A stretch of DNA of 64,000 nt from contig NC_083231.1 of the NCBI RefSeq assembly GCF_032191835.1, positions 126,418,001 through 126,482,000 of the forward strand. Reading direction: 5' to 3'. Shown piece after piece: positions 4,496-59,185 of the stretch (positions are counted from its first letter, which is position 1; the number at the start of each line of letters is the position of its first letter). Position numbers and translations under genes: made by a program. The notes under the pieces were generated by a model. The model worked only from the letters and a program-made list of their open reading frames with translations, was not told where the DNA came from and searched no databases. Source of the stretch: Heteronotia binoei. Lineage: Eukaryota.

Positions 4496-4595
4496 NNNNN
4501 NNNNNNNNNNNNNNNNNNNNNNNNNNNNNNNNNNNNNNNNNNNNNNNNNNNNNNNNNNNNNNNNNNNNNNNNNNNNNNNNNNNNNNNNNNNNNNN
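4496..4595. other. Assembly gap (100 N)
   Basis: Exactly 100 N, typical of a fixed-size scaffolding gap. Confidence 1.
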
Positions 4596-30887: not shown

Positions 30888-33800
30888 CTACACAACTTGG
30901 TTGTTCAGCTGTCCGGGATACTGTTCAAAGCGCCTGCTCGCCTCCTCGCTGAGAGCGTCTCCTGCAAGAGGGATGGAGGGGGGACTGAGCCCTCCCCAGC
31001 AGCAGGGCCTCCCCTCCCCTCCCCCCCTCCCCCTCCCCCCCCCGCCTGCTCCAAACCTATGTGGCAGCTGTGGACCCAGATGCGGTGCCCGTCATATTTG
31101 CAGTTGCACTTCATGGCGTTGTTGGTGAAGTCGCTCTCGGCCACCTCGTAGCGGGGGTTGATCACCACCTGAGAGGGAGCCCTCGGTCAGAGGGGCCCCG
31201 AGGCCCACCAAGCAAAGCCCCCGCCTCTTGCGCGCAGAAGAGCTCCAGGCCCTGGGCTAGGCTGGCAGCAGACGGGAAAGGCGTTCCTCAGCCTGCCCCC
31301 CCCCCCCCCCGCTGTCACCAGAAAGAAGGTGGGGGAAGGGCTCTGTGGGCAACAGGCTGCTCCTCTCCCCCAGCAGGGAGGATCTGGCCGCTCTCCGGGC
31401 CCAGAGGTGGCCTCGCCCGCCCTCCCTGCCAGGGCAAAGCCAGAGCAGCCCCTTGAAGACTCCAAGCCCCCCTGCTGGGGATGGAGAAAGCAAGGTCTCC
31501 GCAAGGGCCTGTGCTAGGCTCTGCCGTGGCTCACCTGCAGAATGTAGTTCCCGGGCCGGACGTCTGTGATGTCGATCCACTGGCAGTCGATGTCGTGTCG
31601 ATAGAGGTCCCAGCAGCCCACAGTGATGCCCTGCTCTCCAAAGTTGGCACACTCGTACCGCTTGCCCACATCTGCCAGAGGAAAGGAGCGCAAGGGAGGG
31701 GGGGGGACGGGCATCCGGTGCTGCCTTTGGCTTCCCTCCTCCTCCCTGCCCAGTCAAGGAGACTGGAGGAAGGCCAGGGCACAGGCAGAGGGCACTGTGG
31801 CTTCACAGTCATGCCCGTGTGCCCGCCCCTGACGCGGCTGGTCTGCAAGGACTCAAGAAAGGCCGTGAAGCTCTCTGAACCCTGCCCCTGCCAGCAAGCT
31901 CTTCCTGCCCCACTCACCCTCCTGGCACTCCGTGTCTTCCAAGCAGAAGCTGGCCTTGTGCCCCTCGGCCACCTTGGTGCCATTGGGGGTGAGGAGGTCA
32001 TAGTGGGTGAAAATGTCCATGCTGTGGTAGTGCCTGGGGGGGGGGGCACAAAGAGAAGGTGAGAGCCAGCAGGGAGGGAGCCCCAGGGAGACCCTTCTGG
32101 CCACCACTGCTCCTTACCCGTGGCATTCGTGCCACACCCAAGAGTGGCGCCCAGCCTTGGGGCGGAAGTCTGCCCGGCCGTTGTTGTGGATTTGAGAGGA
32201 GAAACGCAGGAGGCGCCGGTGCCCATAGGGCCAGTTGGCATTACGGGCGCTGCTCGACAAGCAGTTTTCCTCTGCCGCACAGTAGAGCATGTGCAGAGGG
32301 CGGTCCTCAATGTAGGCCGTCTCTTGCACCAACGGGGCGTGGAGCAGCAAGTCTGAGGCAGCTGCAGGAAGAGAAAGGGGCGCGAGAGAGCTAGCGGGGG
32401 GCTTAAGAACAGAAGAGAAGCCCTGTGGGATCAGGCCAATGGCCCCTCCAGTCCAACACTCTGTGTCACATAAGAACATAAGAGAAGCCCTGTTGGATCA
32501 GGCCAGTGCCCATCCAGTCCAGCACTCTGTGTCACATAAGAACATAAGAGAAGCCCTGTTGGATCAGGCCAGTGGCCCATCCAGTCCAACACTCTGTGTC
32601 ACATAAGAACATAAGAGAAGCCCTGTTGGATCAGGCCAGTGGCCCATCCAGTCCAACACTCTGTGTCACATAAGAACATAAGAGAAGCCCTGTTGGATCA
32701 GGCCAATGGCCCATCCAGTCCAACACTCTGTGTCACATAAGAACATAAGAGAAGCCCTGTTGGATCAGGCCAGTGGCCCCTCCAGTCCAACACTCTGTGT
32801 CACAGAAGAACATAAGAGAAGCCCTGTTGGATCAGGCCAATGGCCCATCCAGTCCAACACTCTGTGTCACATAAGAACATAAGAGAAGCCCTGTTGGATC
32901 ATGCCAGTGGCCCATCCAGTCCAACACTCTGTGTCACATAAGAACATAAGAGAAGCCCTGTTGGATCAGGCCAGTGGCCCCTCCAGTCCAACACTCTGTG
33001 TCACAGAAGAACATAAGAGAAGCCCTGTTGGATCAGGCCAATGGCCCATCCAGTCCAACACTCTGTGTCACATAAGAACATAAGAGAAGCCCTGTTGGAT
33101 CAGGCCAGTGGCCCATCCAGTCCAGCACTCTGTGTCACACTGTGGCCAAAATTTTATATACACACATACACTGTGGCTAATAGCCAGTGATGGACCTCTG
33201 CTCCATATTTTTATCTAAACCCCTCTTGAAGGTGGCTATGCTTGTGGCCGCCGCCACCTCCTGTGGCAGTGAATTCCACATGTTAATCACCCTTTGGGTG
33301 AAGAAGTACTTCCTTTTATCCGTTTTAACCTGTCTGCTCAGCAATTTCATCGAATGCCCACGAGTTCTTGTATTGTGAGAAAGGGAGAAAAGTACTTCTT
33401 TCTCTACTTTCTCCATCCCATGCATTATCTTATAAACCTCTATCATGTCACCCCGCAGTCGACGTTTCTCCAAGCTAAAGAGTCCCAAGCGTTTCAACCT
33501 TTCTTCATAGGGAAAGTGTTCCAGCCCTTTAATCTTTCTAGTTGCCCTTTTCTGGACTTTCTCCAATGCTATAATATCCTTTTTGAGGTGAGGCGACCAG
33601 AAATGCACACAGTACTCCAAATGAGACTGCATCATCGATTTATACAGGGGCATTATGATACTGGCTGATTTGTTTTCAATTCCTTTCCTAATAATCCCCA
33701 GCATGGCGCTGGCCTTTTTTATTGCAAACACACACTGTCTTGACATTTTCAGTGAGTTATCTACCACGACCCCAAGATCTCTCTCTTGGTCAGTCTCTGC

Positions 33801-36800
33801 CAGTTCACACCCCATCAACTTGTATTTGTAGCTGGGATTCTTGGCCCCAATGTGCATTACTTTGCACTTGGCCACATTGAACCGCATCTGCCACGTTGAT
33901 GCCCACTCACCCAGCCTCAACAGATCCCTTTGGAGTTCCTCACAATCCTCTCTGGTTCTTACCACCCTGAACAATTTAGTGTCATCCGCAAACTTGGCCA
34001 CTTCACTGCTCACTCCCAACTCTAAATCATTTATGAACAAGTTAAAGAGCATGGGACCCAGTACGGAGCCCTGCGGCACCCCACTGCTTACCGTTCTCCA
34101 CTGTGAAGACTGCCCATTTATACTCACTCTCTGCTTCCTATTACTCAGCCAGTTTTTGATCCACAAGAGGACCTGTCCTTTTACTCCATGACTCTCAAGC
34201 TTTCTAAGGAGCCTTTGATGAGGAACTTTACCAAAAGCTTTCTGGAAGTCAAGGTAAACAACATCTATCGGGTCTCCTTTGTCCACATGTTTGTTCACCC
34301 CCTCAAAGAAATGTAACAGGTTAGTGAGGCAAGATCTTCCCTTACAGAACCCATGCTGAGTCTTCCTCACTAACCCGTGTTCATCAATGTGCCTACTCAT
34401 TCTGTTCTTGATAATGCTTTCTACCAACTTTCCCGGTATTGAAGTCAGACTGACTGGCCTGTAATTTCCCAGATCTCCTCTGGAACCCTTTTTAAAGATG
34501 GGGGTGACATTTGCTACCTTCCAGTCCTCAGGAACTGAGGCAGATTTCAATGAAAGATTACAGATTTTTGTTAGAAGATCCACAAGTTCAACTTTGAGTT
34601 CTTTCAGAACTCTCGGATGTATGTCATCCGGACCCGTTGACTTATTGTTTTTGGTTTTTGGCTTGGGAGGCCCTGGGGGGGGCAGAGTAGGGGAGAGGGA
34701 TGAGGCAGAGACCTGGCAGGGGGGGCACCCAAAATTCAGCTCTGCCCCCATCCAACCCCTAAGAGAGGGGGCACCCGGAGCCCTGGGGAACATCCAGGGC
34801 AGAGACGCGAGAGAAGTGTAGGACTGCCCCTGCCTGCCCTCCCCCTCCCTGGACTCACTCTCAGAACAGATGACCCCTGCAGCGAAGCGGGCCCCTCTCT
34901 TCTGGCAGTTAAGGGTGTCGTGGTGCGGGCAGTGCCCCAGCGTCATCTCTTGCCCCGTGCACTTCACGCCACTCAGCACCATCTCTGTCACGTTGCTGGC
35001 GTCCCAGTACCACGTTTCCTTGGAGAGACACCAGGCAGCCTGAGTGGGCCGGACCCCTCCCAGCCCCTCACCCTGCCCCAGCCGCACCCCCCAGCCATCC
35101 ACCTACCGTCACGGCATGCATGGCGTAGCCCAGGCCGAGCTGGCGACATGCCACCATGGCCTCCCTGGTGCTCCAGCCCGTGCTGCAAACTGTGCCCCAC
35201 CTCCCGGCGTGCTTCACCTCTATGCGCCCCTCAAAGGCCGTGCGGCCACCGACCAGCCGGATCTGTGGGGAAGCCCTGCAGGGAATGAGCGTGCTGCCTG
35301 CCCCCCACCCCATGGAAAGGCCTGGCTGCCATGCCCCCTTCAGCCCCAGGGAAAGCTCCAAGCTCAGCAGCGGGGCGGGGGGGGGAACGGGGGGGGAGGA
35401 GATGCAAGCCGTCCAGCCAGGAGCGAGAGAAGCCAGCCAGGGGGCCGAGAGCGGGTACCTACTTGCAAGCCTTGGCTGGCAAACCCCAGGCCCAGCTGCC
35501 GGCACACCACCAGGGCCTCCAGAGCCCCCCAGCCCTCGCCACAAACCAGGCCCCACTGGGAGGGGCTGCTGCTGCTCCCAGCCCCCAGCGCCACCTCCAC
35601 CCGCCCCTCAAAGCGGCTGCGGCCCCCGCTCAGGCGGATCTGTGGAGAGAGGGGGAGAGTCAAGGGCTCTGCAGCTCTGGCTCCCTTGGACGACTCCCCC
35701 CCCCCCCGCCATTCCTCCTGGTGTGGTCAGTTGCTATACCTCCCCCCCCCCTGTCTCTGGACTGAGCCCTCCACCCTTTGCTCAACAAAGGCCCCGAGTT
35801 CTTCCTAGCTGGGGGGGCACACGGGGGGACTACGTTGGGGGCAGATCTTGACCCCCGAGAGTATTTCAAGCACCTGCCTGTGCTTGGACCGCTCTCTCTC
35901 CCTCCCTCCGACAGCTGAGGCAGGAGGCGCTAGGGGGGAGGCAAGAGCAGGGGGGAGGGGACAGAGAGGATCTGCCCCCCCCCCCCGTGCAAACCTGATG
36001 CCCTGAGCGGTGATCTGAAGAAGCCTTAAGCAAGAATTGAAGCTCTCTGCCCCCCACTTCCTCAGCCCTCTTGTCTGTGCCAATCAGGGCCTTTGCCAAT
36101 CCAAGGGCAACAAGATCTGACACCAGCTGGGTCAAAGGGCCCTGAGCCAATGAGCTTCCCGCCCCCCCCCCCCGGGCATTGTAGCCTGAGAAAATGGCAC
36201 AGGCTGAAGCCACCCCCCCCCCCCGCCCATGCCACAGATGGGAGCCAAATGGGGCTCTGGAACACAGGTGCCCCCATGGCCCTTGGAGCCCTGCAGAGAG
36301 AAGACGAGAGCTGAGTGGTTCCAGATGCACCTGGGAGCTCCCAGCCCCACAGCAGTCCCCCCCCCCCCATCTGCTGTGCTATTTTACCAGAACGCTCTGC
36401 AAATCCCGTTCTCTGAATTCCCAGCTCTCGGTTTTCAAAAAGCAAGTCTCTAGCCCATTCTGTTGCAGAGATGTGGCTTTCCATTTATAGCAGCACAACA
36501 AAAGAGGCCAGAGAGGTTTTGCCTTCTAAATGAGAGCTGCGGAAGCAGAGAGACAGTTTGGACTGTGTGAAGATCCGGTAGGACTGGGGTGGTGCTGTTG
36601 GGGGCCCGAAGCTGGGAAGCCCACTCCCCTCTCCCCCGCATGGAGCAAGGGCAACAAACCCCTCCCCGCAGCCGATCCCAACCCAGTTCCTCCCAAGGGC
36701 CAGGCCTGCCTGGAGGTTTTAGCCGGCCAGTGTGGGAGCCACATGCTCCAAAGGGCCCTGGAAGCTGTCTTCTCCCACAAGCACTCTGGGCCTACTCCCC

Positions 36801-39800
36801 GCCCACCTGCTTTTGGCCTTGCCTGGAGAGTGAGCAGAAGGGGGGGGGCAGAAGCAGTGACGCTTTGTTGGGGGGGGCCTTTCTGCCTCCTCTCCTGCCT
36901 TTGGGCAGCAGGCCCCCCCTTCCCCGCTCTGTGCACAGGGGGCAGGGTGATCTCTTGCGGGAAGGGGGAGGTGGTAGCGAGAGGTCTGCAGGGGCCCCCT
37001 CCCCTAGCTAGGGCTTCTGCCTGCCTGCCTGGGTGCTGGGCTCCCTTGAGGGTGGCAAGTCCCTGGCTTAGAGGGCCGCAGCAGGCCAGAGGGGGCGGGG
37101 GCAGGTCGGGCTCCTGGCCAGAGCTGGGGGCGGCCCGGCTAACCGTGGTCTCGTAGCCCATGTAGGGGACGTTGCAGCGGACGCCGGCATCCTCCGAGTG
37201 CTTGCAGCCCTCCTGGGTGAGGTTCTTGTGTGGGCAGCTCCACAGTGACTTCTCGGAGCCTGTGCAGCGCACCTCGTTCATGTGGATGGGGCCCATTCCT
37301 GCCAGAGAGGAGAAGGAGCTCATTCATGCCCTCGGGCTCCATCACACCTGCCCAGCTGCCAAGCCCCACCCATAGGAGCTGCCCTGCAGGGAACCAGAGC
37401 GGGGCTCCATCTGGGTCAGCCCTGACTCCGCAGGCAGGGAAAGGCCTCCCACGTCCCCTCCTGCCTGCCTGAGTGTAGGACTTCCTGCAGACCCAGCCGA
37501 AGGGCTGCCACCCCTGAGCCACCAGGGCCCCCCCAGGAGCGAAATGCAGCGGCCCTCTTTTATAACCTGGGGGTGGGACCCCATCCACAGGGGAGCCTAA
37601 AGAGCTCCTGGCTGAGCCCAGATGGAGGGTGGGGCTGGTGGGTGCCATCCAGACTCACCTTGGCCCATGCGTGCCCCTGTCAGGGCCTCCTTGGCACTGC
37701 CAAAGCCCAGCTCCCGGCAAACTACGCTGGCCGACACCAGGTTCCAGCGGTCGTCACAGATGGTGCCCCATTCGCTGTGCCGGAGCACCTCCACCCGCCC
37801 TTCGCCGGCCCTGGCCCCGCCCTTCAGCCGGAGGCGCATCTGTGGGGAATGCCAGGCAGCTCAGAGCGGGCGAGAGACAGCCTGCAGCCCCCCACCTGCC
37901 CTGGGAAGGCTTCCCTCGTGTGGCCTCTCAAGTCAATAGCTTAGCAACCTGCCATACGATAAGGCAAGAGTGATGGTGGCTCACAGGATATTAGATAGTG
38001 CCAGACAAACGGACTTAACTAACTCACAAAAATGGTGCACCTTTATAGCGCTGTTTCATAGGTTTTCTCCCATGCTATATCTGTTTCCCCTAGAAAGCCC
38101 TGAATGCAGCAGAATATTCTCCCTTTTGAGGTGGGACGGCCTCCCTTCTGCAATTAGAGGGCAGCTGCAGGAAAATCCCCTATGAAGCTCGTAGATGCCC
38201 TTGCTGTCATGACGGCAGAGAGTCACTAGTTCACGGCTTTCATGACTGCAAGGGGCACAGGAAGCACGGGGAATCCCTCCTGCCGTCAAAAATATGCCAA
38301 CTAAAAGAACTCCTGGAGGGCAAATATCCTGCAGTTACTCTTAAAATAGCTACATTTGGTTGGTTTGGCTTTAGGACGGGAAAATCACTAGTAGCCTAAA
38401 ATGCTGGAGTATGCTTGTTTTAACAGCCATTTCTGGGTTTTTCCCCAATTTTTATAATGTTATAATACTTTTATAACGTTTTACAGATAGTTCTTATGGA
38501 TATGTATAGTCATCCCTTTTGTTTAAGATGCTGGCTTTTGCCATCTCCTCACCTGCCCAGGCTGCTGCTTCTGCTGCCGCTTCTTCTTCTGGCCGCCACT
38601 TGCCATAAAGAGGGGCCCGGGGACGCAGCCCACCACTGCCGGCATCCCGCCCTTGCACACCCCGGTGGCGTTGCTGCGGTAGAACTCGAAGGAGCAGAGA
38701 GAGAGGTGGACCTCGTTCCCCAGGCAGGAGACCGAGTGCAGCCGGTAGCTGGGGGGGTGTCGCTGCGTGGAGAGCCTGCAAGGGGGGGGCGGTCAGTGCC
38801 AGGGGGAGGCGAGGGGTGCAGCAGAAGGGGACACTGCCTCTGAGCTGCTCTTTGGGCTGAGGGGGCCATTCTCACTGCCCCCCCCCCCCCCAATATCACT
38901 GTCATGGCGAAAGGGAGGCATTTCCGGGGCGGAAGGGGGAGAGTGCTCCTCTCAGCCCAGAGAACATCTCAGCCCCAGCCTTGTGAGCCCTAACAGAGTC
39001 CGGTGCTGTGCTGCCCCCCCCCCCCCCGCAAAAGCTGCCTCTCCTCCCTCACAGAAGAGCTCCCAGCTGCCCTTGAATGAACGCAGCGGCCTCTGGATCC
39101 TCCAGGCTGGGGGGGGGGTGCCCGCATTACCTCTTGGGGCCCCTAAAGGCCTCCCTGCGTCTCTGCTTGGGCCGAGGAGCCCTGGAAAACAGAAGAGAAC
39201 AGTGAAGGGGCCCGCCGATGGCCAGGCCCACCCCCCAGAGCCCCCCCCTGCAGCAGGTCTGAAGCAAGCTCTGCAACCCCCCCCCCCCCCCGTGGTCCCA
39301 AAGGCCTCCCTTTAGCTGCCTTCACCTGGGCAGGGGAGCAGGAACACCCCCTGCTTGGATTAGACCCAGACCCCCCCTTCACCCTCCCCCCCCCACGGCC
39401 TGCTGTTTCCAGCACAGCCAACCCCCCCCCCCCCGGGGGCTCTGAGGAGGGCGGGTGGAGGCCAGCTCTGGGTCTTCCACAGCAGGGGCTCTGGGCTTGC
39501 AGGGAGCCTCTCCGTGGCTCTGGCCTCACTGAGCTGTTCCCCCTGCTTCTGTCTCAAGAAGGCCTGGCCCTGGGGTAACCCCCCTCCCGCCCCCGCAGGA
39601 CCCTCCAGGCTAGGCAAGCAGATGCTGCCTCTGCATCAGAAAAGGCCCGGGGGGGGGGGGGGGGGCGGCCTGTGCACCTGAGCCAGATCTGACCATCACG
39701 GCAATTGTCAAGAACAACAACATTCCCCAAAGGGCCTCGGCCAGAGCCGCAAGGCATGTCAGGGCCACACGGGCTGTCCTGGGGGGGGGGCAGTCCTTTC

Positions 39801-42800
39801 AGCCACCTGATGAGCACAACAGGGAGTTGGTCTTGGCAGTGCCAGCTGTGCCAATGCAAGCTCTACGTGAGGGTGGTGCCCTGAACCCTGATGCCAGTCC
39901 TTGGCCCAGCTGCTGCATCTAAAGACTTAAGAATGGAAAAAGACTCCTTCAGGGAACGGAAAGAAGGCCTTATCGCCAAGGAGGGATACAAACAAATCAC
40001 CAGTGCTTGTAGAGAAAGAGTTAGGAAAGCTAAAGGTCAGGGTGAACTTAGGCTGGCCAAAGATGCTAAAAACAACAGAAAAGGGTTCTTTCTTTGTGTT
40101 CAAAGTAAAAACAAGAGCAAGGACATGGTCGGCCCCTTGCAGGGACAGGAAAGTAAAATTGTAGCAGGTGATGAAGAGGGCGGAACTGCTCAAGACCTAC
40201 TTTTCCTCAGTCTTCTCTTTTGAGGGAAATGGTGCTCAACATGTACATCGCCTAGAGCTCGGCAACAGCCAGGATGAAGCAATTTATAAATTTAATAAAT
40301 AATAATATATAATAATAAAAACAGAACATATAATCAGGGTCGGGAATTGCAACCTAGTATCAGCATAGAGGTAATACATAAACACCGAGTTTCTTTAAAT
40401 GAAGCTAAGTCCTCAGGGCCAGATGAACTGGGCTAAAAGAACTTGTGGATGTAATTTATGAGCCTCTGGCCATTATTTTGAGAATTCTTGGAGAACAGGT
40501 GAGGGGCTGGAAGATTGGAGGTGGGCAAATGCTGTCCCCATCTTCAAAAAGGGGGAAAAGGAGGATCCGGGTAACTACCAACTTATCAGCTTGACATCTA
40601 TATCTGGAAAAGGTTTAGAACAAATCATCAAACAGTCGGTCCTGGAACATTTAGGAAGAATGAATGTGATTTCTAAGAGCCAGCATGGGTTTCTCAAGAA
40701 CAAGTCATGTCAGACTAGCCTTATCTCTTTTTTGGAGAAAGTTACTAACTTGATTTCAGTAAGGCTTTTGATACATACTATCCTTGTTGACAAGTTGGTA
40801 AAATGTGGTTTGGATCCTGTTATTGTTCGGTGGATCTGTAACTGGTTGACAGATCGCACCCAAAGAGTGCTTGTGAATGGTTCCTCATCCTCTTGGAGAG
40901 GAGTGGCAAGTGGAGTGCCTCAAGGATCTGTCCTGGGACCTCTTTTGTTCAACATCTTCATAAATGATTTGGATGAAGGCATAGATGGAATGTTTTTAAA
41001 TCTACAGATACTAAATTGGGAGGTGTTACAAGTACAAAAGAAGACAGAAACAGGATACAGGATGATCTTGACAGGTTGGAATACTGGGCTAAAACCAATA
41101 AAATGAATTTTAACAGGAATAAATGTAAAGTTCATTTAGGTACAAAAAATCCAATGCATATTTATAGCTTGGGGGAGACTTGTCTGGGCAGTAGTGTGTG
41201 CAAAAAGGATCTATGGGTCTTAGTGGACCATATGCTGAACATGAGTCAACAACCTGGAGAGGAGGCTGCTGAGAGGTGATATGATCACCATTTTCAACTA
41301 CTGGAAGGACTGTCATCTAGAGGATGGGGTGGAATTGTTTTCTGTGGCCCCAGAAGGTTGGTCCACAACCAGTGGGTTGAAGTTAGATCAGAAGATTTTC
41401 TGGCTCAACATTAGGAAGAACTTCCTGACAGTTAGAGCGGTTCCTCAGTGGAACAGGGTTCCTCCTTGGGAGGTGGTTATATGGGCATCTGACAGCATTG
41501 CTGATCCTGTGAGCTTAGATCAGGTATTTGTGAATTTTCTGTATTGTGCAGGGGTAAGGTTACCAATCTCCAGGTGGGGGCAGGGGATCCCCCAGTTTGG
41601 AGGCCCTCCCCCCACTTCAGGGTCATCAGAAGGTGGAAATATTGGAAGGTAAAGGGGCATTTCGTGATTTTTGACAATAACTGAAGCTTTGTGGAATAAT
41701 GGACTAAATCCTATTAAGAAATAATTTCCTTTTGTTTTGTTTTTTTGATAAAGGTGAAAGGATAAGAATGAAGATGGACATATAGGGTTTGACTTCTCTT
41801 ATACTCATTCTTCTTTTTTCTTTTTTATTGGGATAAGGCTTTAATATGGAGATTCTTGGTTTGATAAAATTGTCTTGCATTTTTACCAATTTAAGTAAAC
41901 ACCGGCGGGGGTCATAAAAAGGGGGGAGAGGAGGAGGGGGGGAAGTGTAATGTACTGGTATAAATTTGTATTGATTATTTTATTTCTTTAAGAATATTAT
42001 AACAATATATTGCAAATTAATAAAATTGTTTTACACACAAGGAAGTGGGGAAGGGGGGAGGGAAATGTTTGCTGGGCACTCCATTATTCTCTATGGAGAC
42101 CAATTCCCATAGGATATAATGGAGAATTGATCCATGGATATCTGGGGCTCTGGGGGGGCTGTTGTTTGAGGTAGATGCAGCAAATATGCAACATAGCATC
42201 CTATGCCTCTCCTCAAACCACCCACCAAGTTTCAAAAGGATTGGACTAGAGGGTCAAGTTCTATGAAGAAGAAGAAGAAGAAGAAGATATTGGATTTCTA
42301 TCCCGCCCTCCACTCCGAAGAGTCTCAGAGCGGCTCACAATCTCCTTTCCCTTCCTCCCCCACAACAGACACCCTGTGAGGTGGGTGGGGCTGGAGAGGG
42401 CTCTCACAGCAGCTGCCCTTTCAAGGACAACCTCTGCCAGAGCTATGGCTGACCCAAGGCCATTCCAGCAGGTGCAAGTGGAGGAGTGGGGAATCAAACC
42501 TGGTTCTTCCAGATAAGAGTCCGCACACTTAACCATTACACCAAACTGGCTCTCCTATGAGCCCCAAAATGGAGGGAATGTAATGTAACGGCAAGACCTC
42601 CCTTTGGAGTTCAAATATGCCTGTCAGAACCTTGCTCCTGGCTCCACCCCCAAAGTTCCCAGATGCTTCCTGGCAGCCCTGTTCAGGGGGCTTGGACCAG
42701 ATGACGCTGGGGGGCCCTTCAACTCTGTGATTTTATGATTTCATCAGCCCCTGTCCAGCCCAGAAGCCCCCAGAGAGGCACAGGGGCCATTCAAACCCAT

Positions 42801-45800
42801 CCTAGCCCCCAAGCCTTGGCTTTTAGTGTTGGCTGTCATTTTTGTGGGCAGCCTTGCAGCTACCCGTGGCGCAGTGGTAAAACTGCAGTCCTAAGCTCTG
42901 CTCATGACCTGAGTTCGATCCCGGCGGAAGCTGGGTTCAGGTAGCCGGCTCAGGTTGACTCAGCCTTCCATCCTTCCGAGGTCGGTCAAAGGAGTCCCCA
43001 GCTTGCTGGGGGAAAGCGTAGATGACTGGGGAAGGCAATGGCAACCACCCCGTAAAAAGTCTGCCGTGAAAACGTTGTGAAAGCAGCATCACCCCAGAGT
43101 CGAAAATGACTGGTGCTTGCAGAGGGGACCTTGCAGCTACTAGTGGGTGGAAAGCCCGAGGGGGCCTGTGTTACCCCTGACGGCCTCCTCTCTGCCTCCG
43201 CGAACTGGGCTCCCTCGGAGTGTGCAAGCTGCCTAGGCCAGTTGGTGGCTGTGCCCAGCTCTCATGGGGAAGCACAGAAAGGACTTCCTTTTTCCCCTCT
43301 GGCACCACCTGCTCTATGATTTCACCATGTCTAGAAAACCCCTCTGACTGCTCCAGAGGCGAGGAAGCCCTCACGCCTGAGCCACGTGTGTGCGAGGAAG
43401 TGCAAACCATAACTCCACCCCCCCACACAAATGCCTTTCCTCAGCAGGAAAAGAGGCCACAAAGCCCCCCCCCCCACCTCCCCCTCTTCCTGGCGGGCCA
43501 AGGCCAGGCCCGTCTCCACAGCCAGTGCAGCCAGTGAGGAGGAGGAGGAGGGGCCTGCTGGTGAGTCATCCCCTGGAAAGGCTGGGCACACAGGGGGAGC
43601 TTTGTCCCCAGGCTCTTTCCAGACTCCCATTCATGTCTCTCCAGTCCTCCTCGTGGCTACCCTCTGCCCCTCTCCGTGCCACAGTCCTGGAAGGCCAGGA
43701 AAGGAGGGCAAGCAAGGCCCTGCCACTGCCCCCTCCCCTCCCCTGCTTGCTCTTCCTTCCTTGCTCGACCTTTGAGCTGCCTGGGGAGAGCTTTGCCTGC
43801 TGCCCTGGCCCCTGCTCTATGGCCTGGCCTCTTCCTCCTCCTCCTCCTCCTCCCTGCTGCCTGCCTGTGCAGAAGCAGCCCCCTCCCCTCCCCCCCCCCC
43901 CCCCGCAGGGGAGCAAGGCTAAGGAGAGCCTGCTGGCCTCAGACAAGCAGCCCCTCCCTCCTGCTGGCCCCTCAGCAAGGCCAAGGGTGGGCAGGAAAAA
44001 GAGCCCCTCGAAACAGACCCCCCCTTTCCAGAAACCTGCAGGCCTTGGCCCCTCCTCCTCCCCCAGGGCAGGAGGGCACCGGAAGGGAGAAAGGTCTCCC
44101 CCTCCCCGCAGCTGGGCGCTGGGATTGGGAGGGCTGAGAGGCCAGCAGGCGCCCCCCGGAACGATCCCAAGCAGGTCAGGGTGCCCCAGACTTCCGGGAT
44201 GAACCTCGTGCCCTCCAAGCCCAAAGGGAGCCAGAAAGCCAGCCAGTGCAGGGGGTCCTTCTGCTTGGGAGAGAGGTTCATCCCCACCCCCCCGCTCACG
44301 GCCGGATTCCCAGCCACTCAATCCAGCCGGGATGGGCCTGCCACCCGCTGCGTAGCCGGGTCCCATCCCGCAGGGAAGCCTCGGGGCTGCACGACCCCGC
44401 AGGGCCCGTTACCTCCTGCCACCGAGGCCTGCCTTCCTCGGGCCCTTGGCCGCCTTGGCCACTCGCCTGAACCGCCTGCTGGGGAGGCAAAGGCAGCGGC
44501 AGCAGCAGCCGCCTCTTAGTGGGGAGGGAAAGGCCAGGAGCCCCCAGACCAGTCAGCTCTCCCTGCCCTACAGGCTGGGCCTCCCGCCCTGTGGGCCAGA
44601 TGTGTGCAGGGAGCGGCATGCTCTGAACAGGCCCTCCCCTCCAGGGCCCCCTTTGCCCTGCTGCAGAAATGCCTTCGCAGCGACAGAGAAGTCGGCCCAA
44701 AGGGAGAAGCAGCAGCTCCTGAGGCTGGGCTGGTGCAGCGGCTGCTGGATGGCAGAAGGGCCTGAGCTCCGACAGGGCCCTCCCCTCCCCACCCCCACCC
44801 CGAGGCTGACCCAGCAGGCCAGGACTCACCGGTAGAAATTCCGGTTGACTTTCTTCTCAGCAGGGAAGCCCAGCATGCCACAGACGACCCGGCTGTTCTG
44901 GCTGCTCCAGCTCTCGTCACAAATCTGGGCCCAGCTGTTTTTGTAGCGGACTTCCACGATGCCCTCTGTCACCGGCAGCGGCCGCTTGGCGTGGGAGACA
45001 ACTGGGCGCAGCCGGAGCTCTTCCACCTGGTTCTGCTCTGTCTGGGGAGAGGGGCAAGTATCAGCCCCCCAGCAGCCACTTTGGCCCTCCCTGCAGGGGC
45101 CACCCACAATCCACGTTGTGGGGGGAGCAGGCTGGCAGGAATTCTCTCTGCTCCAGGAAGCAAGATCCAGAGCAAGCCTCTAGTCTGCACTGGACAGCAA
45201 CCACACAATGCTGCCCCGCCCTCCCCACAGACCCCATGTACCCACGGCTTTGTGGGGCAAATTGGTAAGAGGGTGTGCCAGGAGTCCAAGGCAGGCTGGA
45301 AGCTTCCTGGCTCTCCTCCAGTGCTCTTTGCAAGGCCCTGAGTGCGAAGGGACATATCAGAGGCTGCAAGCAATCCGGAGGGATTTGTGGGGCAGCTGGG
45401 CAATGTGGAGCCCTTCGGGAGGGCTTGGGGCACAGGGGACAAGGACCTCTTGGGAGAAAACCACTCAGAAAGGGGTTGTAGCTACTGGGAGGCTTTCAGG
45501 AGGACTTAGGGCTCCAGGGACGAGGCCCTCTTGTGAGAAAACCACTCAGAAAGGGGTTGTAGCTACTGGGAGGGATTTTGGGAGGGCTTGGGGCACAGGG
45601 GATGAGGCCCTCTTGTGAGAAAACCACTCAGAAAGGGGTTGTAGCTACTGGGAGGCTTTCGGGAGGACTTAGGGCTCCAGGGACGAGGCCCTCTTGTGAG
45701 AAAACCACTCAGAAAGGGGTTGTAGCTACTGGGAGGGATTTTGGGAGGGCTTGGGGCTCTGGTGACGAGGCCCTCTTGTGAGAAAACCACTCAGAAAGAG

Positions 45801-46253
45801 GTTGTACCTACTGGGAGGGATTTTGGGAGGGCTTGGGGCACAGGGGATGAGGCCCTCTTGTGAGAAAACCACTCAGAAAGGGGTTGTAGCTACTGGGAGG
45901 CTTTCGGGAGGACTTGGAGCTCCAGGGATGAGGACCTCTTGTGAGAAAACCACTCAGAAAGGGGTTGGAGATACTGGGAGGGATTTCGGGAGGGCTTGGG
46001 GCTCCAGGGACGAGGCCCTCTTGTGAGAAAACCACTCAGAAAGGGGTTGTAGCTACTGGGAGGGATTATGGGAGGGCTTGGGGCTCCAGGGACGAGGCCC
46101 TCTTGTGAGAAAACCACTCAGAAAGGGGCTGTAGCTACTGGGAGGGATTTCGGGAGGGCTTGGGGCTCCAGCGACATAAGAACATAAGAGAAGCCATGTT
46201 AGATCAGGCCAATGGCCCATCCAGTCCAACATTCTGTGTCACAAAGCGGCCAA

Positions 46254-46305
<52 letters not shown>

Positions 46306-49300
46306 ACTGTGGCTAATAGCCACTGATGGACCTCTGCTCCATATTTTTATCTAACCCCCTCTTGAAGGTGGCCATGCTTGTGGCCGCCACCACCTCCTGT
46401 GGCAGTGAATTCCACATGTTAATCACCCTTTGGGTGAAGAAGTACTTCCTTTTATCCGTTTTAACCTGTCTGCTCAGCAATTTCATCGAATGCCCACGAG
46501 TTCTCGTATTGTGAGAAAGGGAGAAAAGTACTTCTTTCTCTACTTTCTCCATCCCATGCATTATCTTGTAAACCTCTATCATGTCACCCCTCAGTCGACG
46601 TTTCTCCAAGCTAAAGAGCCCTAAGCGTTTCAACCTTTCTTCATAGGGAAGGTGTTCCAGCCCTTTAATCATTCTAGTTGCCCTTTTCTGAACTTTCTCC
46701 AATGCTATAATATCCTTTTTGAGGTGCGGCGACCAGAACTGCACACAGTACTCCAAATGAGACCGCACCATCGATTTATACAGGGGCATTATGATACTGG
46801 CTGATTTGTTTTCAATTCCCTTCCTAATAATTCCCAGCATGGCGTTGGCCTTTTTTATTGCAAACGCACTTGCGACTTGGGAGAGCTTCGGGCTCCGGGT
46901 ACAAGGCCCTCTTGTGAGAAAACCACTCAGAAAGGGGTTGAAGTTACTGGGAGGGATTTCGGGAGGGCTTGGGTCTCCGGGTACAAGGCCCTCTTGTGAG
47001 AAAACCACTCAGAAAGGGGATGTAGCTACTGGGAGAACTTTTGGGAGGGCCTGGGGCACAGGGGATGAGGCCCTCTTGTAAGAAAACCACTCAGAAAGGG
47101 TTTGTAGCTATTGCGAGGGATTTCAGAAGGGCTTGGGGCTCCAGGGATGAGGCCCTCTTGTGAGAAAACTCAGAAAGGGGTTGTAGCTACTGGGAGGGAT
47201 TTCGGGAGGGCTTGGGGCTCCAGGGACAAGGCCCTCTTGTGAGAAAACCACTCCGAAAGGGGTTGTAGCTACTGGGAGGGATTTCAGGAGGGCTTGGGGC
47301 TCCAGCAACAAGGACCTCTTGTGAGAAAATCACTCAGAAAGGGGTTGTAGCTACTGGGAGGCTTTCGGGAGGGCTTGGGGCTCCGGGTACAAGGCCCTCT
47401 TGTGATAAAACGACTCGGAAAGGGGTTGTAGCTGCTGGGAGGGATTTCGGGAAGGTTTGGGGCACGGGGGATGAGGCCCTCTTGTGAGAAAACGACTGAG
47501 AAAGGGGTTGTAGCTGCTGGGAGGGATTTCGGGAGGGTCTGGTGCAAGGGGGAAGAGGCTCTCTTGTGAGAAAACGACTCGGAAAGGGGTTGTAGCTGCT
47601 GGGAGGGATTTCGGGAAGGCTTGGGGCATGGGGAAGAGGCCCTCTTGTGAGAAAACGACTCGGAAAGGGGTTGTAGCTGCTGGGAGGGATTTCGGGAGGG
47701 CCTGGGGCACGGGGAAGAGGCCCTCTTGTGAGAAAACGACTCGGAAGGGGGTTGTAGCTGCTGGGAAGGATTTCGGAAGGGCAGGGGGGATGAGGCCCTC
47801 TTGTGATAAAACGACTCGGAAAGGGGTTGTAGCTGCTGGGAGGGATTTCGGGAAGGTTTGGGGCACGGGGGATGAGGCCCTCTTGTGAGAAAACAACTCT
47901 GAAATGGGTTGTAGCTGCTGGGAGGGATTTCGGGAGGGCCTGGGGCACGGGGGATGAGGCCCTCTTGTGATAAAACGACTCGGAAAGGGGTTGTAGCTGC
48001 TGGGAGGGATTTCGGGAAGGTTTGGGGCACGGGGGATGAGGCCCTCTTGTGAGAAAACGACTCGGAAAGGGGTTGTAGCTGCTGGGAGGGATTTCGGGAG
48101 GGCCTGGTGCAAGGGGGAAGAGGCTCTCTTGTGAGAAAACGACTCGGAAGGGGGTTGTAGCTGCTGGGAGGGATTTCGGGAAGGCTTGGGGCACGGGGGA
48201 TGAGGCCCTCTTGTGAGAAAACGACTCGGAAAGGGGTTGTAGCTGCTGGGAGGGATTTCGGGAGGGCCTGGGGCACGGGGGAAGAGGCCCTCTTGTGAGA
48301 AAACAACTCGGAAAGGGGTTGTAGCTGCTGGGAGAGATTTCGGGAGGGCCTGGGGCACGGGGGATGAGGCCCTCTTGTGAGAAAACGACTCGGAAAGGGG
48401 TTGTAGCTGCTGGGAGGGATTTTGGGAGGGTCTGGGGCACAGGGGAAGAGGCCCTCTTGTGAGAAAACGACTCGGAAAAGGGTTGTAGCTGCTGGGAGGG
48501 ATTTCGGGAGGGCCTGGGGCACGGGGGATGAGGCCCTCTTGTGAGAAAACGACTCGGAAAGGGGTTGTAGCTGCTGGGAGGGATTTCGGGAGGGCCTGGG
48601 GCACGGGGGAAGAGGCCCTCTTGTGAGAAAACGACTCGGAAAGGGGTTGTAGCTGCTGGGAGGGATTTCGGGAGGGCCTGGGGCACGGGGGAAGAGGCCC
48701 TCTTGTGAGAAAACGACTCGGAAAGGGGTTGTAGCTGCTAGGAGGGATTTCGGGAGGGCCTGGGGCACGGGGGAAGAGGCCCTCTTGTGAGAAAACGACT
48801 CGGAAAGGGGTTGTAGCTGCTGGGAGGGATTTCGGGAGGGCCTGGGGCACGGGGGAAGAGGCCCTCTTGTGAGAAAACGACTCGGAAAGGGGTTGTAGCT
48901 GCTGGGAGGGATTTCGGGAAGGCTTGGGGCACGGGGGATGAGGCCCTATTGTGAGAAAACGACTCGGAAAGGGGTTGTAGCTGCTGGGAGGGATTTCGGG
49001 AGGGGCTGGGGCACGGAGGAAGAGGCCCTCTTGTGAGAAAACGACTCGGAAAGGGGTTGTAGCTGCTGGGAGGGATTTTGGGAGGGTCTGGGGCACGGGG
49101 GAAGAGGCCCTCTTGTGAGAAAACGACTCGGAAAGGGGTTGTAGCTGCTGGGAGGGATTTCGGGAGGGCCTGGGGCACGGGGGATGAGGCCCTCTTGTGA
49201 GAAAACGACTCGGAAAGGGGTTGTAGCTGCTGGGAGGGATTTCGGGAGGGCCTGGGGCACGGGGGAAGAGGCCCTCTTGTGAGAAAACGACTCGGAAAGG

Positions 49301-52300
49301 GGTTGTAGCTGCTGGGAGGGATTTCGGGAGGGCCTGGGGCACGGGGGAAGAGGCCCTCTTGTGAGAAAACGACTCGGAAAGGGGTTGTAGCTGCTGGGAG
49401 GGATTTCGGGAGGGCCTGGGGCACGGGGGAAGAGGCCCTCTTGTGAGAAAACGACTCGGAAAGGGGTTGTAGCTGCTGGGAGGGATTTCGGGAGGGCCTG
49501 GGGCACGGGGGAAGAGGCCCTCTTGTGAGAAAACGACTCGGAAAGGGGTTGTAGCTGCTGGGAGGGATTTCGGGAAGGCCTGGGGCACGGGGGATGAGGC
49601 CCTATTGTGAGAAAACGACTCGGAAAGGGGTTGTAGCTGCTAGGAGGGATTTCGGGAGGGCCTGGGGCACGGAGGAAGAGCCCCTCTTGTGAGAAAACGA
49701 CTCGGAAAGGGGTTGTAGCTGCTGGGAGGGATTTCGGGAGGGCCTGGGGCACGGGGGAAGAGGCCCTCTTGTGAGAAAACGACTCGGAAAGGGGTTGTAG
49801 CTGCTAGGAGGGATTTCGGGAGGGCCTGGGGCACGGGGGAAGAGGCCCTCTTGTGAGAAAACGACTCGGAAAGGGGTTGTAGCTGCTGGGAGGGATCTCG
49901 GGAGGGCCTGGGGCACGGGGGAAGAGGCCCTCTTGTGAGAAAACGACTCGGAAAGGGGTTGTAGCTGCTGGGAGGGATTTCGGGAAGGCTTGGGGCACGG
50001 GGGATGAGGCCCTATTGTGAGAAAACGACTCGGAAAGGGGTTGTAGCTGCTGGGAGGGATTTCGGGAGGGGCTGGGGCACGGAGGAAGAGGCCCTCTTGT
50101 GAGAAAACGACTCGGAAAGGGGTTGTAGCTGCTGGGAGGGATTTCGGGAGGGCAGGGGGTATGAGGCCCTCTTGTGAGAAAACGACTCGGAAAGGGGTTG
50201 TAGCTGCTGGGAGGGATTTCGGGAGGGCAGGGGGGATGAGGCCCTCTTGTGAGAAAACGACTCGGAAAGGGGTTGTAGCTGCTGGGAGGGATTTCGGGAG
50301 GGCCTGGGGCACGGGGGAGGAGGCCCTCTTGTGAGAAAACGACTCGGAAAGGGGTTGTAGCTGCCTGGAGGGATTTCGGGAGGGCAGGGGGGATGAGGCC
50401 CTCTTGTGAGAAAACGACTCGGAAAGGGGTTGTAGCTGCTGGGAGGGATTTCGGGAGGGCCTGGGGCACGGGGGAAGAGGCCCTCTTGTGAGAAAACGAC
50501 TCGGAAAGGGGTTGTACCTGCTGGGAGGGATTTCGGGAGGGCCTGGGGCACGGGGGAAGAGGCCCTCTTGTGAGAAAACGACTCGGAAAGGGGTTGTAGC
50601 TGCTGGGAGGGATTTCGGGAGGGCCTGGGGCACGGGGGAAGAGGCCCTCTTGTGAGAAAACGACTCGGAAAGGGGTTGTAGCTGCTGGGAGGGATTTCGG
50701 GAAGGCTTGGGGCACGGGGGAAGAGGCCCTCTTGTGAGAAAACGACTCGGAAAGGGGTTGTAGCTGCTGGGAGGGATTTCATGAGGGCAGGTGGGATGAG
50801 GCCCTCTTGTGATAAAACGACTCGGAAAGGGGTTGTAGCTGCTGGGAGGGATTTCGGGAGGGCCTGGGGCACGGGGGATGAGGCCCTCTTGTGATAAAAC
50901 GACTCGGAAAGTGGTTGTAGCTGCTGGGAGGGATTTCGGGAGGGCAGGGGGGATGAGGCCCTCTTGTGATAAAACGACTCGGAAAGGGGTTGTAGCTGCT
51001 GGGAGGGATTTCGTGAGGGCAAGGGGGATGAAGCCCTCTTGTGAGAAAATGACTCGGAATGTGGTTGTAGCTGCTGGGAGGGATTTCGGGAGGGCAGGGG
51101 GGATGAGGCCCTCTTGTGATAAAACGACTCGGAAAGTGGTTGTAGCTGCTGGGAGGGATTTCGGGAGGGCAGGGGGGATGAGGCCCTCTTGTGAGAAAAC
51201 AACTCGGAAAGGGGTTGTAGCTGCTGGGAGGGATTTCGGGAGGGCCTCGGGCACGGGGGAAGAGGCCCTCTTGTGAGAAAACAACTCGGAAGGGGGTTGT
51301 AGCTGCTGGGAGGGATTTCGGGAAGGCTTGGGGCACGGGGGATGAGGCCCTCTTGTGAGAAAACAACTCGGAAAGGGGTTGTAGCTGCTGGGAGGGATTT
51401 CGGGAGGGCCTGGGGCACGGGGGAAGAGGCCCTCTTGTGAGAAAACACCTCGGAAAGGGGTTGTAGCTGCTGGGAGAGATTTCGGGAGGGCCTGGGGCAC
51501 GGGGGATGAAGCCCTCTTGTGAGAAAACGACTCGGAAAGGGGTTGTAGCTGCTGGGAGGGATTTTGGGAGGGTCTGGGGCACGGGGGAAGAGGCCTTCTT
51601 GTGAGAAAACGACTCGGAAAGGGGTTGTAGCTGCTGGGAGGGATTTCGGGAGGGCCTGGGGCACGGGGGATGAGGCCCTCTTGTGAGAAAACGACTCGGA
51701 AAGGGGTTGTAGCTGCTGGGAGGGATTTCGGGAGGGCCTGGGGCACGGGGGAAGAGGCCCTCTTGTGAGAAAACGACTCGGAAAGGGGTTGTAGCTGCTG
51801 GGAGGGATTTCGGGAGCGCCTGGGGCACGGGGGAAGAGGCCCTCTTGTGAGAAAACGACTCGGAAAGGGGTTGTAGCTGCTGGGAGGGATTTCGGGAGGG
51901 CCTGGGGCACGGGGGAAGAGGCCCTCTTGTGAGAAAACGACTCGGAAAGGGGTTGTAGCTGCTGGGAGGGATTTCGGGAGGGCCTGGGGCACGGGGGAAG
52001 AGGCCCTCTTGTGAGAAAACGACTCGGAAAGGGGTTGTAGCTGCTGGGAGGGATTTCGGGAGGGCCTGGGGCACGGGGGAAGAGGCCCTCTTGTGAGAAA
52101 ACGACTCGGAAAGGGGTTGTAGCTGCTGGGAGGGATTTCGGGAAGGCTTGGGGCACGGGGGATGAGGCCCTATTGTGAGAAAACGACTCGGAAAGGGGTT
52201 GTAGCTGCTGGGAGGGATTTCGAGAGGGCCTGGGGCACGGAGGAAGAGGCCCTCTTGTGAGAAAACGACTCGGAAAGGGGTTGTAGCTGCTGGGAGGGAT

Positions 52301-58300: not shown

Positions 58301-59185
58301 CCCACCTGCCAGAAACATTTCAAGGGGGGTGTTCTTGGCATCCCCACCCTCTCCCTCCCCCCATTCGCACCAGCCTGGACTCCTCCCCTCCCCTCTCCTG
58401 TCTCCCTCTCTTTGGGGCTGCTAAGGAGATGCGCCTGCCAGTTGTCGTGTGGTCTGCTGAGGCCGAAGCTCCAGCCGGGGCCCCCACGTCCCTGAGGAGA
58501 CCCACCTCAATCACATTGGAAGCGACAAAGCCAGGGATGCGCTCGTCCTTGCAGATGACGCCGGCATCTTCCTCGTGGGAACAGTCGCTGTTGCCCCAGC
58601 CCCGTGAGCGGCAGTCCAACACGCTCTTCTCGCCCCCACCACAGCTCAGGTTGTCCAGCCAGATACGCCCTGTGTGTGGGGGAGGGGGCCCCAGTCATGC
58701 CAGAGAAATGAGGCCGGGAAGGGAGGTCACACAAGCCCCGCCCCCTGCCAGGGCCAGAGGGGGTGGGGCCCCCGGGGTTCTCCTCTGCCTGCCCCTCTTG
58801 GGCCTGAGGCTGACCTGCAGAGGAGGGGAATGGAGGGCTTCTCCACGCTCCCCCCCACCCCACTGCAGCCAGACTAGCTGAACTCACCGGAGCCTTTGCC
58901 ATATTTGGCACTGTGGGTCCAGCCGGTGGCAGCGACAAAGCCCAGGTGGCGGCAGAGAACGTGGGCATTGGCCAGGGTGAAGTCGTCGTCACAGATGGTG
59001 CCCCACTCTTGGTTGTAGAAGACCTCGATGCGCCCCTCGTTGTGCTTGCGGGGGTAGCCTGCCAGCCGGAGCTGCAGGGGGCTCTGCCCCGTGGGCGTCG
59101 GAGGGCTTGGCTCAGCTGCGCTCACCCACAGCCAGATGCCACACCAGAGGCTGAGCAGCTCCCACCTCCCACAAGCGGCACCCAT
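30888..59185 (-). CDS. LOXL3: Lysyl oxidase-like 3 (signal peptide, 4 SRCR domains, Cu/LTQ catalytic domain); 750 aa with exon 8a or 743 aa with exon 8b
   Basis: Coding exons 59185-58888, 58669-58506, 45041-44830, 38775-38553, 37839-37659, 37298-37144, [35639-35463 or 35262-35107], 35018-34859, 32361-32118, 32033-31918, 31671-31535, 31168-31057 and 30961-30888. All are GT-AG and in phase. Motifs [23 protein letters not shown] and [14 protein letters not shown]; C-terminus [15 protein letters not shown]. Confidence 0.96.
32403..33140 (-). repeat. Second tandem array (~11 x 67 bp) of the CR1 3' terminus, in LOXL3 intron 9
   Basis: Same unit as 16397-19578, continuous with the CR1 body at 33141. 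Confidence 0.95.
33141..34652 (-). mobile_element. Young 5'-truncated CR1 with an uninterrupted RT-to-C-terminus reading frame (~490 codons)
   Basis: ORF 33177..35102 contains [27 protein letters not shown] and KFADDTK with no stop until 33177. Confidence 0.95.
35107..35262 (-). CDS. LOXL3: LOXL3 exon 8b (alternative first half of SRCR4), 156 nt, phase 0-0
   Basis: ccccacag|ATC...ACG|gtaggt, encoding [52 protein letters not shown]. Confidence 0.9.
35463..35639 (-). CDS. LOXL3: LOXL3 exon 8a (first half of SRCR4), 177 nt, phase 0-0
   Basis: ctccacag|ATC...CAA|gtaggt, encoding [59 protein letters not shown]. Confidence 0.9.
39920..42740 (+). mobile_element. Degenerate CR1 LINE whose 3' end is interrupted (~41557-42680) by nested elements
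   Basis: ORF pieces 39891..40223, 40591..41106 ([21 protein letters not shown]) and 41281..41652. The tail resumes at ~42682 and ends ctctgtgattttatgattt. Confidence 0.78.
42267..42554 (-). mobile_element. Full-length tRNA-derived SINE (Squam2-like) with a (CTT)n tail
   Basis: Minus-strand head gagccagtttggtgtaatggttaag...ggtttgattcccc, (gaa)n tail on the plus strand, and a 6-bp TSD ctatga at 42261-42266 and 42555-42560. Confidence 0.82.
42858..43130 (+). mobile_element. Sauria SINE (Squam1-like)
   Basis: Head gtggcgcagtggtaaa...gagttcgatcc, body gttgactcagccttccatccttccgaggtcgg and 3' part ggggaaggcaatggcaaccacccc. Recognised from memory. Confidence 0.78.
45420..53095. repeat. 82-bp minisatellite (with 75-bp variants), ~85 copies, in LOXL3 intron 3
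   Basis: Unit gaggccctcttgtgagaaaacgactcggaaaggggttgtagctgctgggagggatttcgggagggcctggggcacgggggaa. Period measured 48776 to 48858. Confidence 0.97.
46175..46869 (-). mobile_element. CR1 3' fragment inserted inside the 82-bp minisatellite
   Basis: ORF 46313..47008 carries the CR1 ORF2 C-terminus, with a single tail and an expanded (TA)n(CA)n tract. VNTR units lie on both sides. Confidence 0.93.
53868..54415 (+). mobile_element. CR1 ORF2 fragment
   Basis: ORF 53876..54481: [12 protein letters not shown]...KCKVLHLG...[13 protein letters not shown]...[16 protein letters not shown]. Confidence 0.88.
55445..56067 (+). mobile_element. CR1 3' fragment
   Basis: [16 protein letters not shown]-like sequence through ggactagatgaccctggaggtcccttc. 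Confidence 0.85.
56428..56540 (-). mobile_element. Short CR1 tail fragment
   Basis: cacagaatcctagagttggaagggacctccaggatcatctagtccaacccctgcac. Confidence 0.75.
57180..57660 (+). mobile_element. CR1 3' fragment with the classical octamer tail
   Basis: [21 protein letters not shown]..., ending tatgattctgtgattctatga. Confidence 0.88.

Follow-up and report, generated by a model that had tools for sequence, protein, structure and literature searches.

What does a gene do with two intact versions of the exon that encodes one half of a domain? This question is raised by a locus in the genome of Heteronotia binoei, within a stretch of 64,000 nucleotides (nt) of the NCBI RefSeq assembly GCF_032191835.1 (contig NC_083231.1, positions 126,418,001 to 126,482,000 of the forward strand). 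We refer to this whole stretch as the window, and coordinates follow its own numbering unless another contig is named. The gene is LOXL3. Its product is a collagen cross-linking enzyme needed for the development of the palate, spine, eye and cartilage, and zebrafish loxl3b serves as the standard non-mammalian LOXL3 model. Between exons 7 and 9 of the window gene stand two exons, here termed 8a and 8b, each of which encodes an N-terminal half (N-half) of SRCR4, the last of four SRCR domains. The explanation that we consider probable is that exon 8 underwent an ancient duplication and that 8a and 8b now constitute a homologous-exon substitution of the SRCR4 N-half, with 7-8a-9 and 7-8b-9 as the productive messenger RNAs (mRNAs).

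The identity of the gene follows from its architecture. Stop-to-stop reading frames and translated searches (tblastn) reveal four SRCR domains, each spread over two exons, followed by a lysyl oxidase domain, a layout that marks the gene as a LOXL3 orthologue within the LOXL2/3/4 subfamily. The exon translations match the Pfam SRCR family, and the gene model is colinear with squamate proteins. Coding exons 2-14 lie on the reverse strand within approximate outer limits of 30891..59221, as placed by tblastn with squamate LOXL3 proteins and by blastn against the Podarcis and Anolis loci, with which DNA similarity is seen in exons only; the window belongs to a squamate lineage other than these two. 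Sequence identity between the catalytic exons and those of the vertebrate LOXL3 loci under comparison is 83-99%, and the top database matches of the gene are lizard LOXL3 proteins, none of them identical to it.

All exons discussed here are read from the reverse strand, and a slash marks the boundary between exon and intron. Exon 7 (37144..37298, placed by translation) encodes the C-terminal half of SRCR3 and ends in phase 0 at ...YETT/gttagc. It is separated by an intron of 1504 nt (35640..37143) from exon 8a (35463..35639), whose 177 nt encode 59 amino acids (aa) of a long-loop SRCR4 N-half and end at the donor CAA/gtaggt. An intron of 200 nt (35263..35462) precedes exon 8b (35107..35262), whose 156 nt encode a short-loop, basic SRCR4 N-half of 52 aa and end at the donor ACG/gtaggt. 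Both were placed by translation, Pfam matches and orthologues. After a further intron of 88 nt (35019..35106), exon 9 (34859..35018) supplies the C-terminal half of SRCR4, beginning in phase 0 (ETWYWD...) and ending in phase 1.

Exons 8a and 8b are free of stop codons, begin with IRLxGGR, contain the motifs EGRxEV, WGxVC and EAxVxCRQLGLG, and carry two Cys each. The sequence ccacag precedes and gtaggt follows both exons, and the DNA that can be aligned between them includes these splice sites. Their peptides are 50% identical (BLASTP E 3e-19) and match the first half of the Pfam SRCR model (43 and 56.9 bits); each covers positions 1-47 of the 100 positions of that model, and exon 9 covers positions 58-100. 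Moreover, a tblastn search of the whole window finds 8a and 8b as the only SRCR4-type N-halves, and they resemble each other more than they do any of the remaining SRCR N-half exons. A resemblance so far beyond chance indicates that they are true tandem duplicates of one LOXL3 exon. A preliminary description of this DNA, prepared from the letters alone, had claimed two intact, tandem SRCR4 N-half exons in LOXL3; the claim is correct to the base, and every feature it named is present. Derivation of 8b from exon 6 of SRCR3 was also considered and is rejected: the phases differ, the motif CRQLGLGY is common to 8b and 8a, and a tree places the SRCR3 N-half far outside the pair.

How old is the duplication? 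The order 7, 8a, 8b, 9 recurs in a bird-like contig (L002), in two fish contigs (L001 and L003) and in the turtle Emydura macquarii (L010), where both exons are intact and lie 191 nt apart. The taxon labels of the Logan contigs L001-L006 derive from sequence similarity and base composition rather than from metadata; L002 is GC-rich, and L001 and L003 are AT-richer with compact introns. A search with the open reading frame (ORF) around 8b as query returned one genomic ORF of another species that reads through an 8a-like exon, the intron and an 8b-like exon, and another that reads through 8b, the intron and exon 9. Both exon types occur in turtle, bird, gecko, bichir, sturgeon, bowfin and teleosts. 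Since the pair is common to gecko, turtle, birds and ray-finned fishes, it predates their common ancestor, and by this distribution of sequences we take the duplication to be older than the last ancestor shared by reptiles, turtles, birds and ray-finned fishes.

The two types have remained distinct. When 13 species carrying both exons were compared (the window species, a gecko, four birds, bichir, sturgeon, bowfin and four teleosts), constant features of 8a were a loop longer by 5-7 residues, often with NGT, the motif WGL(I/V)CGEGWG, and the ending (F/Y)AN(H/Q)GLQ. Constant features of 8b were a short basic hairpin, the motif WGTVCSxGW(T/S)T, and the ending Y(S/A)xHA(V/I)T. A maximum-likelihood tree, which uses 58 columns and is therefore indicative only, unites the 8b sequences in 97% of bootstrap trees and the 8a sequences in 72%. 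Each type repeats the species tree, and three LOXL2 sequences fall outside both (91/95). Such a topology would fit a duplication that took place in the LOXL3 lineage before the split of ray-finned fishes from tetrapods, which is more than 400 million years old. The preliminary description had called the duplication old and had linked an ending of the HAVT type with non-mammalian LOXL3; the occurrence of both types from turtle to teleosts, each forming its own group, bears out the first statement, and the second is right.

Two further observations concern the history of the pair. Teleost proteins named lysyl oxidase homolog 3A (P0284, P0287 and P0291) contain the 8a type only, and genes named loxl3b contain both types, so 8b may have been lost from one of the paralogues that the teleost genome duplication produced. 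A LOXL-like gene in a Logan contig (L004:98-872, SRR25569774) has introns of 65-80 nt and a catalytic domain that is 47% identical, and is probably of invertebrate origin. The SRCR4 N-half of this gene lacks the loop and falls, with weak support, beside 8b instead of 8a or LOXL2, which may leave room for an even older origin of the duplication.

Long retention of both copies is matched by their conservation. Mean pairwise identity over squamates, birds, basal ray-fins and teleosts is 77% for 8b and 72% for 8a, next to 73% for exon 7 and 78% for exon 9. Ratios of nonsynonymous to synonymous substitution rates (dN/dS) over the available DNA pairs range from 0.13-0.24 for 8a, 0.05-0.22 for 8b and 0.07-0.25 for exon 9. 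These values indicate that both copies are kept under purifying selection, like the constitutive exon 9, and the range of 0.05-0.24 for the two exons upholds what had been claimed on this point.

Two lineages of lizards have nevertheless each given up one copy, and not the same one. All Anolis isoforms listed use 8a, and all lacertid isoforms listed use 8b. In the locus of Anolis carolinensis (L008), 8a and exon 9 are 366 nt apart, and the intron holds a relic of 8b (L008:35384-35420) that consists of the end of the exon and its donor (...LGLG-AMHAIT/gtaggt) with a broken frame; it is 81% identical to the window 8b over 42 nt (E 7e-8). In Podarcis muralis (L009) 8b comes 347 nt after exon 7, and intron 7 contains a decayed 8a (L009:9801-9974). 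This relic is colinear with the window 8a, with 20 nt at 95% and 54 nt at 76% identity, lacks the first third of the exon and includes a stop codon. Thus, Anolis deleted 8b and Podarcis let 8a decay. Either version alone therefore suffices for a viable animal, and either can be the one retained. Conservation of the pair in other squamates holds for the geckos, which keep both exons as the window species does, and fails for Anolis and Podarcis.

We then asked which exons are present in annotated LOXL3 proteins. The query was the 641-aa open frame of the window that begins with exon 9, with scoring confined to exon 9. The best 120 of 597 database matches, nearly all of them named lysyl oxidase homolog 3, 3A or 3B, were combined with 79 cluster members to give 199 LOXL3 proteins; five without exon 9 were excluded, which left 194 that could be classified. 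Between exons 7 and 9, 8a alone is present in 96 of these 194 proteins and 8b alone in 40; both exons are found in about 28 and neither in 25, and the remainder have a retained intron or a partial sequence. These counts describe public gene models, for which backing by RNA sequencing is not visible model by model, and are not independent observations. A separate search of protein representatives with the 52-aa 8b peptide, ranked by summed score, gave giant multi-SRCR proteins and no LOXL3 among its best 150 matches.

Among the models are pairs of isoforms that differ by an exact swap: X1 (759 aa, 8a) versus X2 (754 aa, 8b) in Paralichthys olivaceus, and X10 (780 aa, 8a) versus X11 (775 aa, 8b) in Danio rerio. 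In addition, a Logan RNA contig (L007) spans the entire 755-aa zebrafish protein X13 with a 7-8a-9 junction, and is an 8a-only transcript. Pfam recognises four SRCR stretches in single-exon isoforms and five in the zebrafish isoform with both exons. The structure of the domain suggests why single-exon forms should be the productive ones. A group-A SRCR domain comprises about 100 residues with six Cys in three disulfides, two of which link the N-half to the C-half, and in the LOXL2 structure (5ZE3) every Cys takes part in a disulfide, with three such bonds in each of the group-A domains SRCR3 and SRCR4. The two Cys of 8a or 8b and the four of exon 9 add up to this number, so a folded domain needs one N-half for each C-half. 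By analogy with this structure, a protein with both exons would be left with two unpaired Cys, as would a protein with neither. This pairing is the main argument that single-exon mRNAs are the productive forms, and since one SRCR domain needs exactly one N-half, mutual exclusivity of 8a and 8b is plausible. We infer that it extends to the window species. Double inclusion and double skipping would then be tolerated, unproductive by-products.

Several observations weigh against such a swap. Many public models hold both exons and many others hold neither, so that 8a and 8b may instead be two independent cassette exons. Models with both come from Gekko kuhli, Calypte, Zonotrichia, Mycteria, Polypterus, Acipenser, Amia, Electrophorus and Labeo, and the curated zebrafish reference (NP_001139156.1, LOX3B_DANRE; P0462, 807 aa) likewise contains 8a and 8b. 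Spliced Logan fragments were sought with a bird query of exons 7, 8b and 9, and only genomic ORFs with intron flanks were recovered. The window 8a departs at four residues that are at least 90% conserved in 73 other 8a sequences (the changes are T to A, M to L, N to S and one extra loop residue), and only three of those 73 depart as much. Finally, AlphaFold2 models of SRCR4 plus the catalytic domain in the 8b-type (Podarcis) and the 8a-type (Eublepharis), made from a 31-row alignment, reached a mean pLDDT of 35.7 and 36.3, respectively, and are unusable.

The first of these points could mean that joint inclusion is the normal state, as the zebrafish reference has it, and that LOXL3 has four and a half SRCR domains. 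This arrangement would preserve the reading frame, and about 28 of the 194 classifiable proteins display it. Against it stand the two partnerless Cys that an extra N-half would bring into a fold whose Cys are all paired in LOXL2, the single-exon isoforms annotated in the same species (Danio X10, X11 and X13), and the existence of the full-length 8a-only transcript. Furthermore, Anolis and Podarcis each dropped one copy with no compensating change, and gene builders tend to chain all supported exons into the longest model. We therefore regard routine joint inclusion as improbable, and the 807-aa zebrafish reference Loxl3b may be a chimeric model. On the candidate mutually exclusive exons of the preliminary description the records point both ways: swap pairs are annotated and a full-length 8a-only RNA contig is found, and models with both exons, the zebrafish reference included, or with neither are annotated as well.

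The departures of the window 8a bear on another explanation, namely that the window species uses one copy only, most likely 8b, and that the other, though still intact, is turning into a pseudo-exon, as 8a did in lacertids and 8b in Anolis. The window 8b departs at a single conserved residue, and conservatively; in the tree, the branch of the window 8a measures 0.12 versus 0.027 for Gekko; and the reciprocal losses in two squamate lineages demonstrate that one copy is dispensable. These differences hint, and only hint, that constraint on 8a may be relaxing in this lineage, as in lacertids. On the other side, the frame of 8a, both of its Cys, its strong acceptor and its conserved donor CAA/gtaggt are all intact, its substitutions are conservative, and its window-to-bird dN/dS is 0.17. 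Reliance on a single copy thus appears unlikely to us, although less so than routine joint inclusion, and we favour a swap in which both exons are in use.

If exon 8 was indeed duplicated in tandem before the split between ray-finned fishes and tetrapods, either product would supply strands 1-3, the single helix and two of the six Cys of SRCR4, and exon 9 would supply the C-half. The productive mRNAs would be 7-8a-9 and 7-8b-9 because a group-A SRCR domain needs exactly one N-half. Replacing 8a with 8b would exchange a long hairpin loop, neutral or acidic in charge and often N-glycosylated (NGT in fishes and geckos), for a short basic loop (K-R/H-G/A-x-K/R), and would alter the segment after the helix from FANHGLQ to YS/AxHAVT. 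The AlphaFold2 models are too poor for mapping these changes onto a surface, so the mapping goes by analogy with LOXL2. SRCR4 together with the catalytic region in the 8b-type aligns with the crystal structure of human LOXL2 (5ZE3) at E 1e-161. LOXL2 represents the long-loop, 8a-like form only; 8b requires two 2-residue gaps in the alignment, in the hairpin between strands 2 and 3 that follows the EGRVEV strand.

The preliminary description had envisaged a switch of the SRCR domain next to the catalytic domain. The exon pair does belong to SRCR4, and the LOXL2 structure (5ZE3) presents no contact between SRCR4 and the catalytic domain, so this framing calls for caution. By analogy with LOXL2, the switch therefore most likely changes the binding or the glycosylation of the enzyme, and not catalysis itself.

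How might the choice between the exons be made? All splice sites at 8a and 8b are of the U2-type GT-AG class. The acceptor of 8a is the more pyrimidine-rich (a fraction of 0.86 versus 0.68 for 8b), and its donor is the weaker, with A at position -1, whereas that of 8b is stronger. The two exons amount to 333 nt, all of it gained on double inclusion and lost on double skipping. The end of exon 7 and the start of exon 9 are in phase 0, and 8a and 8b are both phase 0-0, so the frame is kept with either exon, with both and with neither. The lengths of 8a and 8b are multiples of three, which confirms the earlier statement that double inclusion stays in frame, and for the same reason nonsense-mediated decay (NMD) cannot police the choice. 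We infer that selection of one exon would be governed by competition between splice sites, with 8a offering the better acceptor and 8b the better donor, together with tissue-specific splicing factors.

A more rigid mechanism had been proposed in the preliminary description, which pointed to a pyrimidine tract after the 8a donor as a candidate distant branch-point region. Such a branch point near the 8a donor would enforce exclusivity sterically, as it does for exons 4a and 4b of OGDH, where branch points lie 25-41 nt from the donor, the pyrimidine tract is very long and the AG exclusion zone likewise extended (PMC7969005). The window does have a C-rich tract 30-95 nt past the 8a donor (~35369..35432, reverse strand), and the intron between 8a and 8b is short in three amniotes, at 147 nt in the bird-like contig, 191 nt in the turtle and 200 nt in the window. 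The tract is present in the window species only, being absent in bird, turtle and fish, and neither the window nor the bird has a yUnAy motif closer than 70 nt to the 8a donor. The two fish introns measure 547 nt (L001) and 630 nt (L003). Between the 8a donor region and the 8b acceptor are eight AGs (at -15, -33, -37, -61, -65, -77, -95 and -102), five of them YAG, which leaves no AG exclusion zone.

The branch point is more readily placed close to 8b. The predicted site, CTCAT (35285..35289, reverse strand), conforms to yUnAy; its A, at 35286, precedes the 8b acceptor by 24 nt. A yUnAy motif 23-29 nt upstream of this acceptor is found in four of five species (the window, the bird and both fishes), and the turtle has the non-consensus tgatcac at that place. 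With a proximal motif this common, the tract confined to one species and introns of 147-630 nt, the claim of a distant branch point is not borne out, and steric exclusivity of the OGDH kind is very improbable at this locus. An AG located 15 nt upstream of the 8b acceptor (35276..35277, reverse strand) is conserved in all five species (the window, L002, L010, L001 and L003). It sits between the predicted branch point and the real AG, and its use would shift the frame by 13 nt.

Competing RNA structure was considered as a further mechanism and dropped. The RNA from the 8a donor to exon 9 folds less stably than shuffled sequence (z +3), and an inverted-repeat search returned only pairings of G-runs with C-runs, none above background. 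Overall, none of the classical means of enforcement (a distant branch point, a clash of U2 and U12 sites, a frameshift coupled to NMD, or competing pairing) was found at LOXL3. A separate observation concerns hexamers of the Rbfox type. The sequence UGCAUG precedes 8b by about 30 nt both in the bird-like contig (L002:1355-1360) and in the turtle (L010, ~10587-10592), where the window has GCACG, and TGCATG is present inside 8b, at the M-H-A codons, in the window and the fishes.

Catalogues of homologous-exon substitutions in human genes list 236 events (Martinez-Gomez et al., PMC9741552; PMC8373072), and LOXL3 is absent from the main text of both papers and from the part of the PMC9741552 supplement that was available. 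The exon pair resembles the catalogued tandem duplicated exons in being adjacent, ancient and equal in phase, in its purifying selection on both members, and in its changes, which affect loop and surface while structural residues are kept. It differs in its occurrence, having been seen in sauropsids and in ray-finned fishes and not described for human LOXL3, and in that its double inclusion and double skipping are both spared by NMD and both annotated. Like OGDH 4a/4b (PMC7969005), the pair is vertebrate-wide and has a short intron in amniotes; unlike it, LOXL3 has an intron that lacks a conserved distant branch point, a long tract and an AG exclusion zone.

For human LOXL3, with 14 exons and a product of 753 aa, a review names LOXL3-sv1 and LOXL3-sv2 as the sole variants (PMC6678131). 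These resemble the proposed swap in that splicing alters the SRCR region and retains the catalytic domain. In contrast to an exchange of half a domain, they remove whole SRCR domains by loss of exons 1-3 and 5, or of exons 4-5. Searches of the literature on alternative or duplicated LOXL3 exons and on loxl3b splicing yielded no description of the pair. The isoform sequences themselves are already public in RefSeq, UniProt and Ensembl-derived records. As far as we have searched, no description exists of their interpretation, of the age of the pair, of its reciprocal losses or of the zebrafish reference as a probably mis-modelled protein.

A broader proposal is that LOXL3 in the ancestor of bony vertebrates made two enzymes with distinct binding through a tissue- or stage-regulated swap of the SRCR4 N-half, and that later lineages resolved the pair more than once and in opposite ways, with Anolis and presumably mammals keeping 8a and lacertids keeping 8b. 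The chances that this proposal is right seem to us about even. If it is, the zebrafish reference Loxl3b with both halves would be an annotation chimera. More generally, if fishes, birds and most reptiles make two variants of SRCR4, then work in zebrafish or chick based on one complementary DNA or on the 807-aa reference may misrepresent the native protein. Two real variants would also provide a natural handle on the role of the SRCR domains in LOXL proteins, complete with natural knock-outs in Anolis (without 8b) and lacertids (without 8a). They would constitute a homologous exon substitution unseen by human-centred catalogues, and would indicate that such a pair can persist without the classical mechanisms of exclusivity.

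Several repeats were noted in and beside the window gene. In intron 9 an ORF for a CR1-type LINE reverse transcriptase (33180-34700, reverse strand; Pfam RVT_1, 122 bits) lies on the strand of the gene and forms, together with exon 9, the single open frame of 641 aa. The same intron contains a tandem array (32404-33139) of 11 copies of a 67-nt unit that are 96% alike and end about 20 nt short of exon 10. Another array (45407-46175) comprises about nine copies of an 82-nt unit, 89-91% alike, in the intron upstream of the exon for the N-terminal half of SRCR2. The window also includes a run of N at 4496-4595. Directly 3′ of LOXL3 is a minisatellite of about 3.9 kb (25283-29152) with G-rich units of 54-56 nt, which, being open in several frames of either strand, resembles long ORFs.

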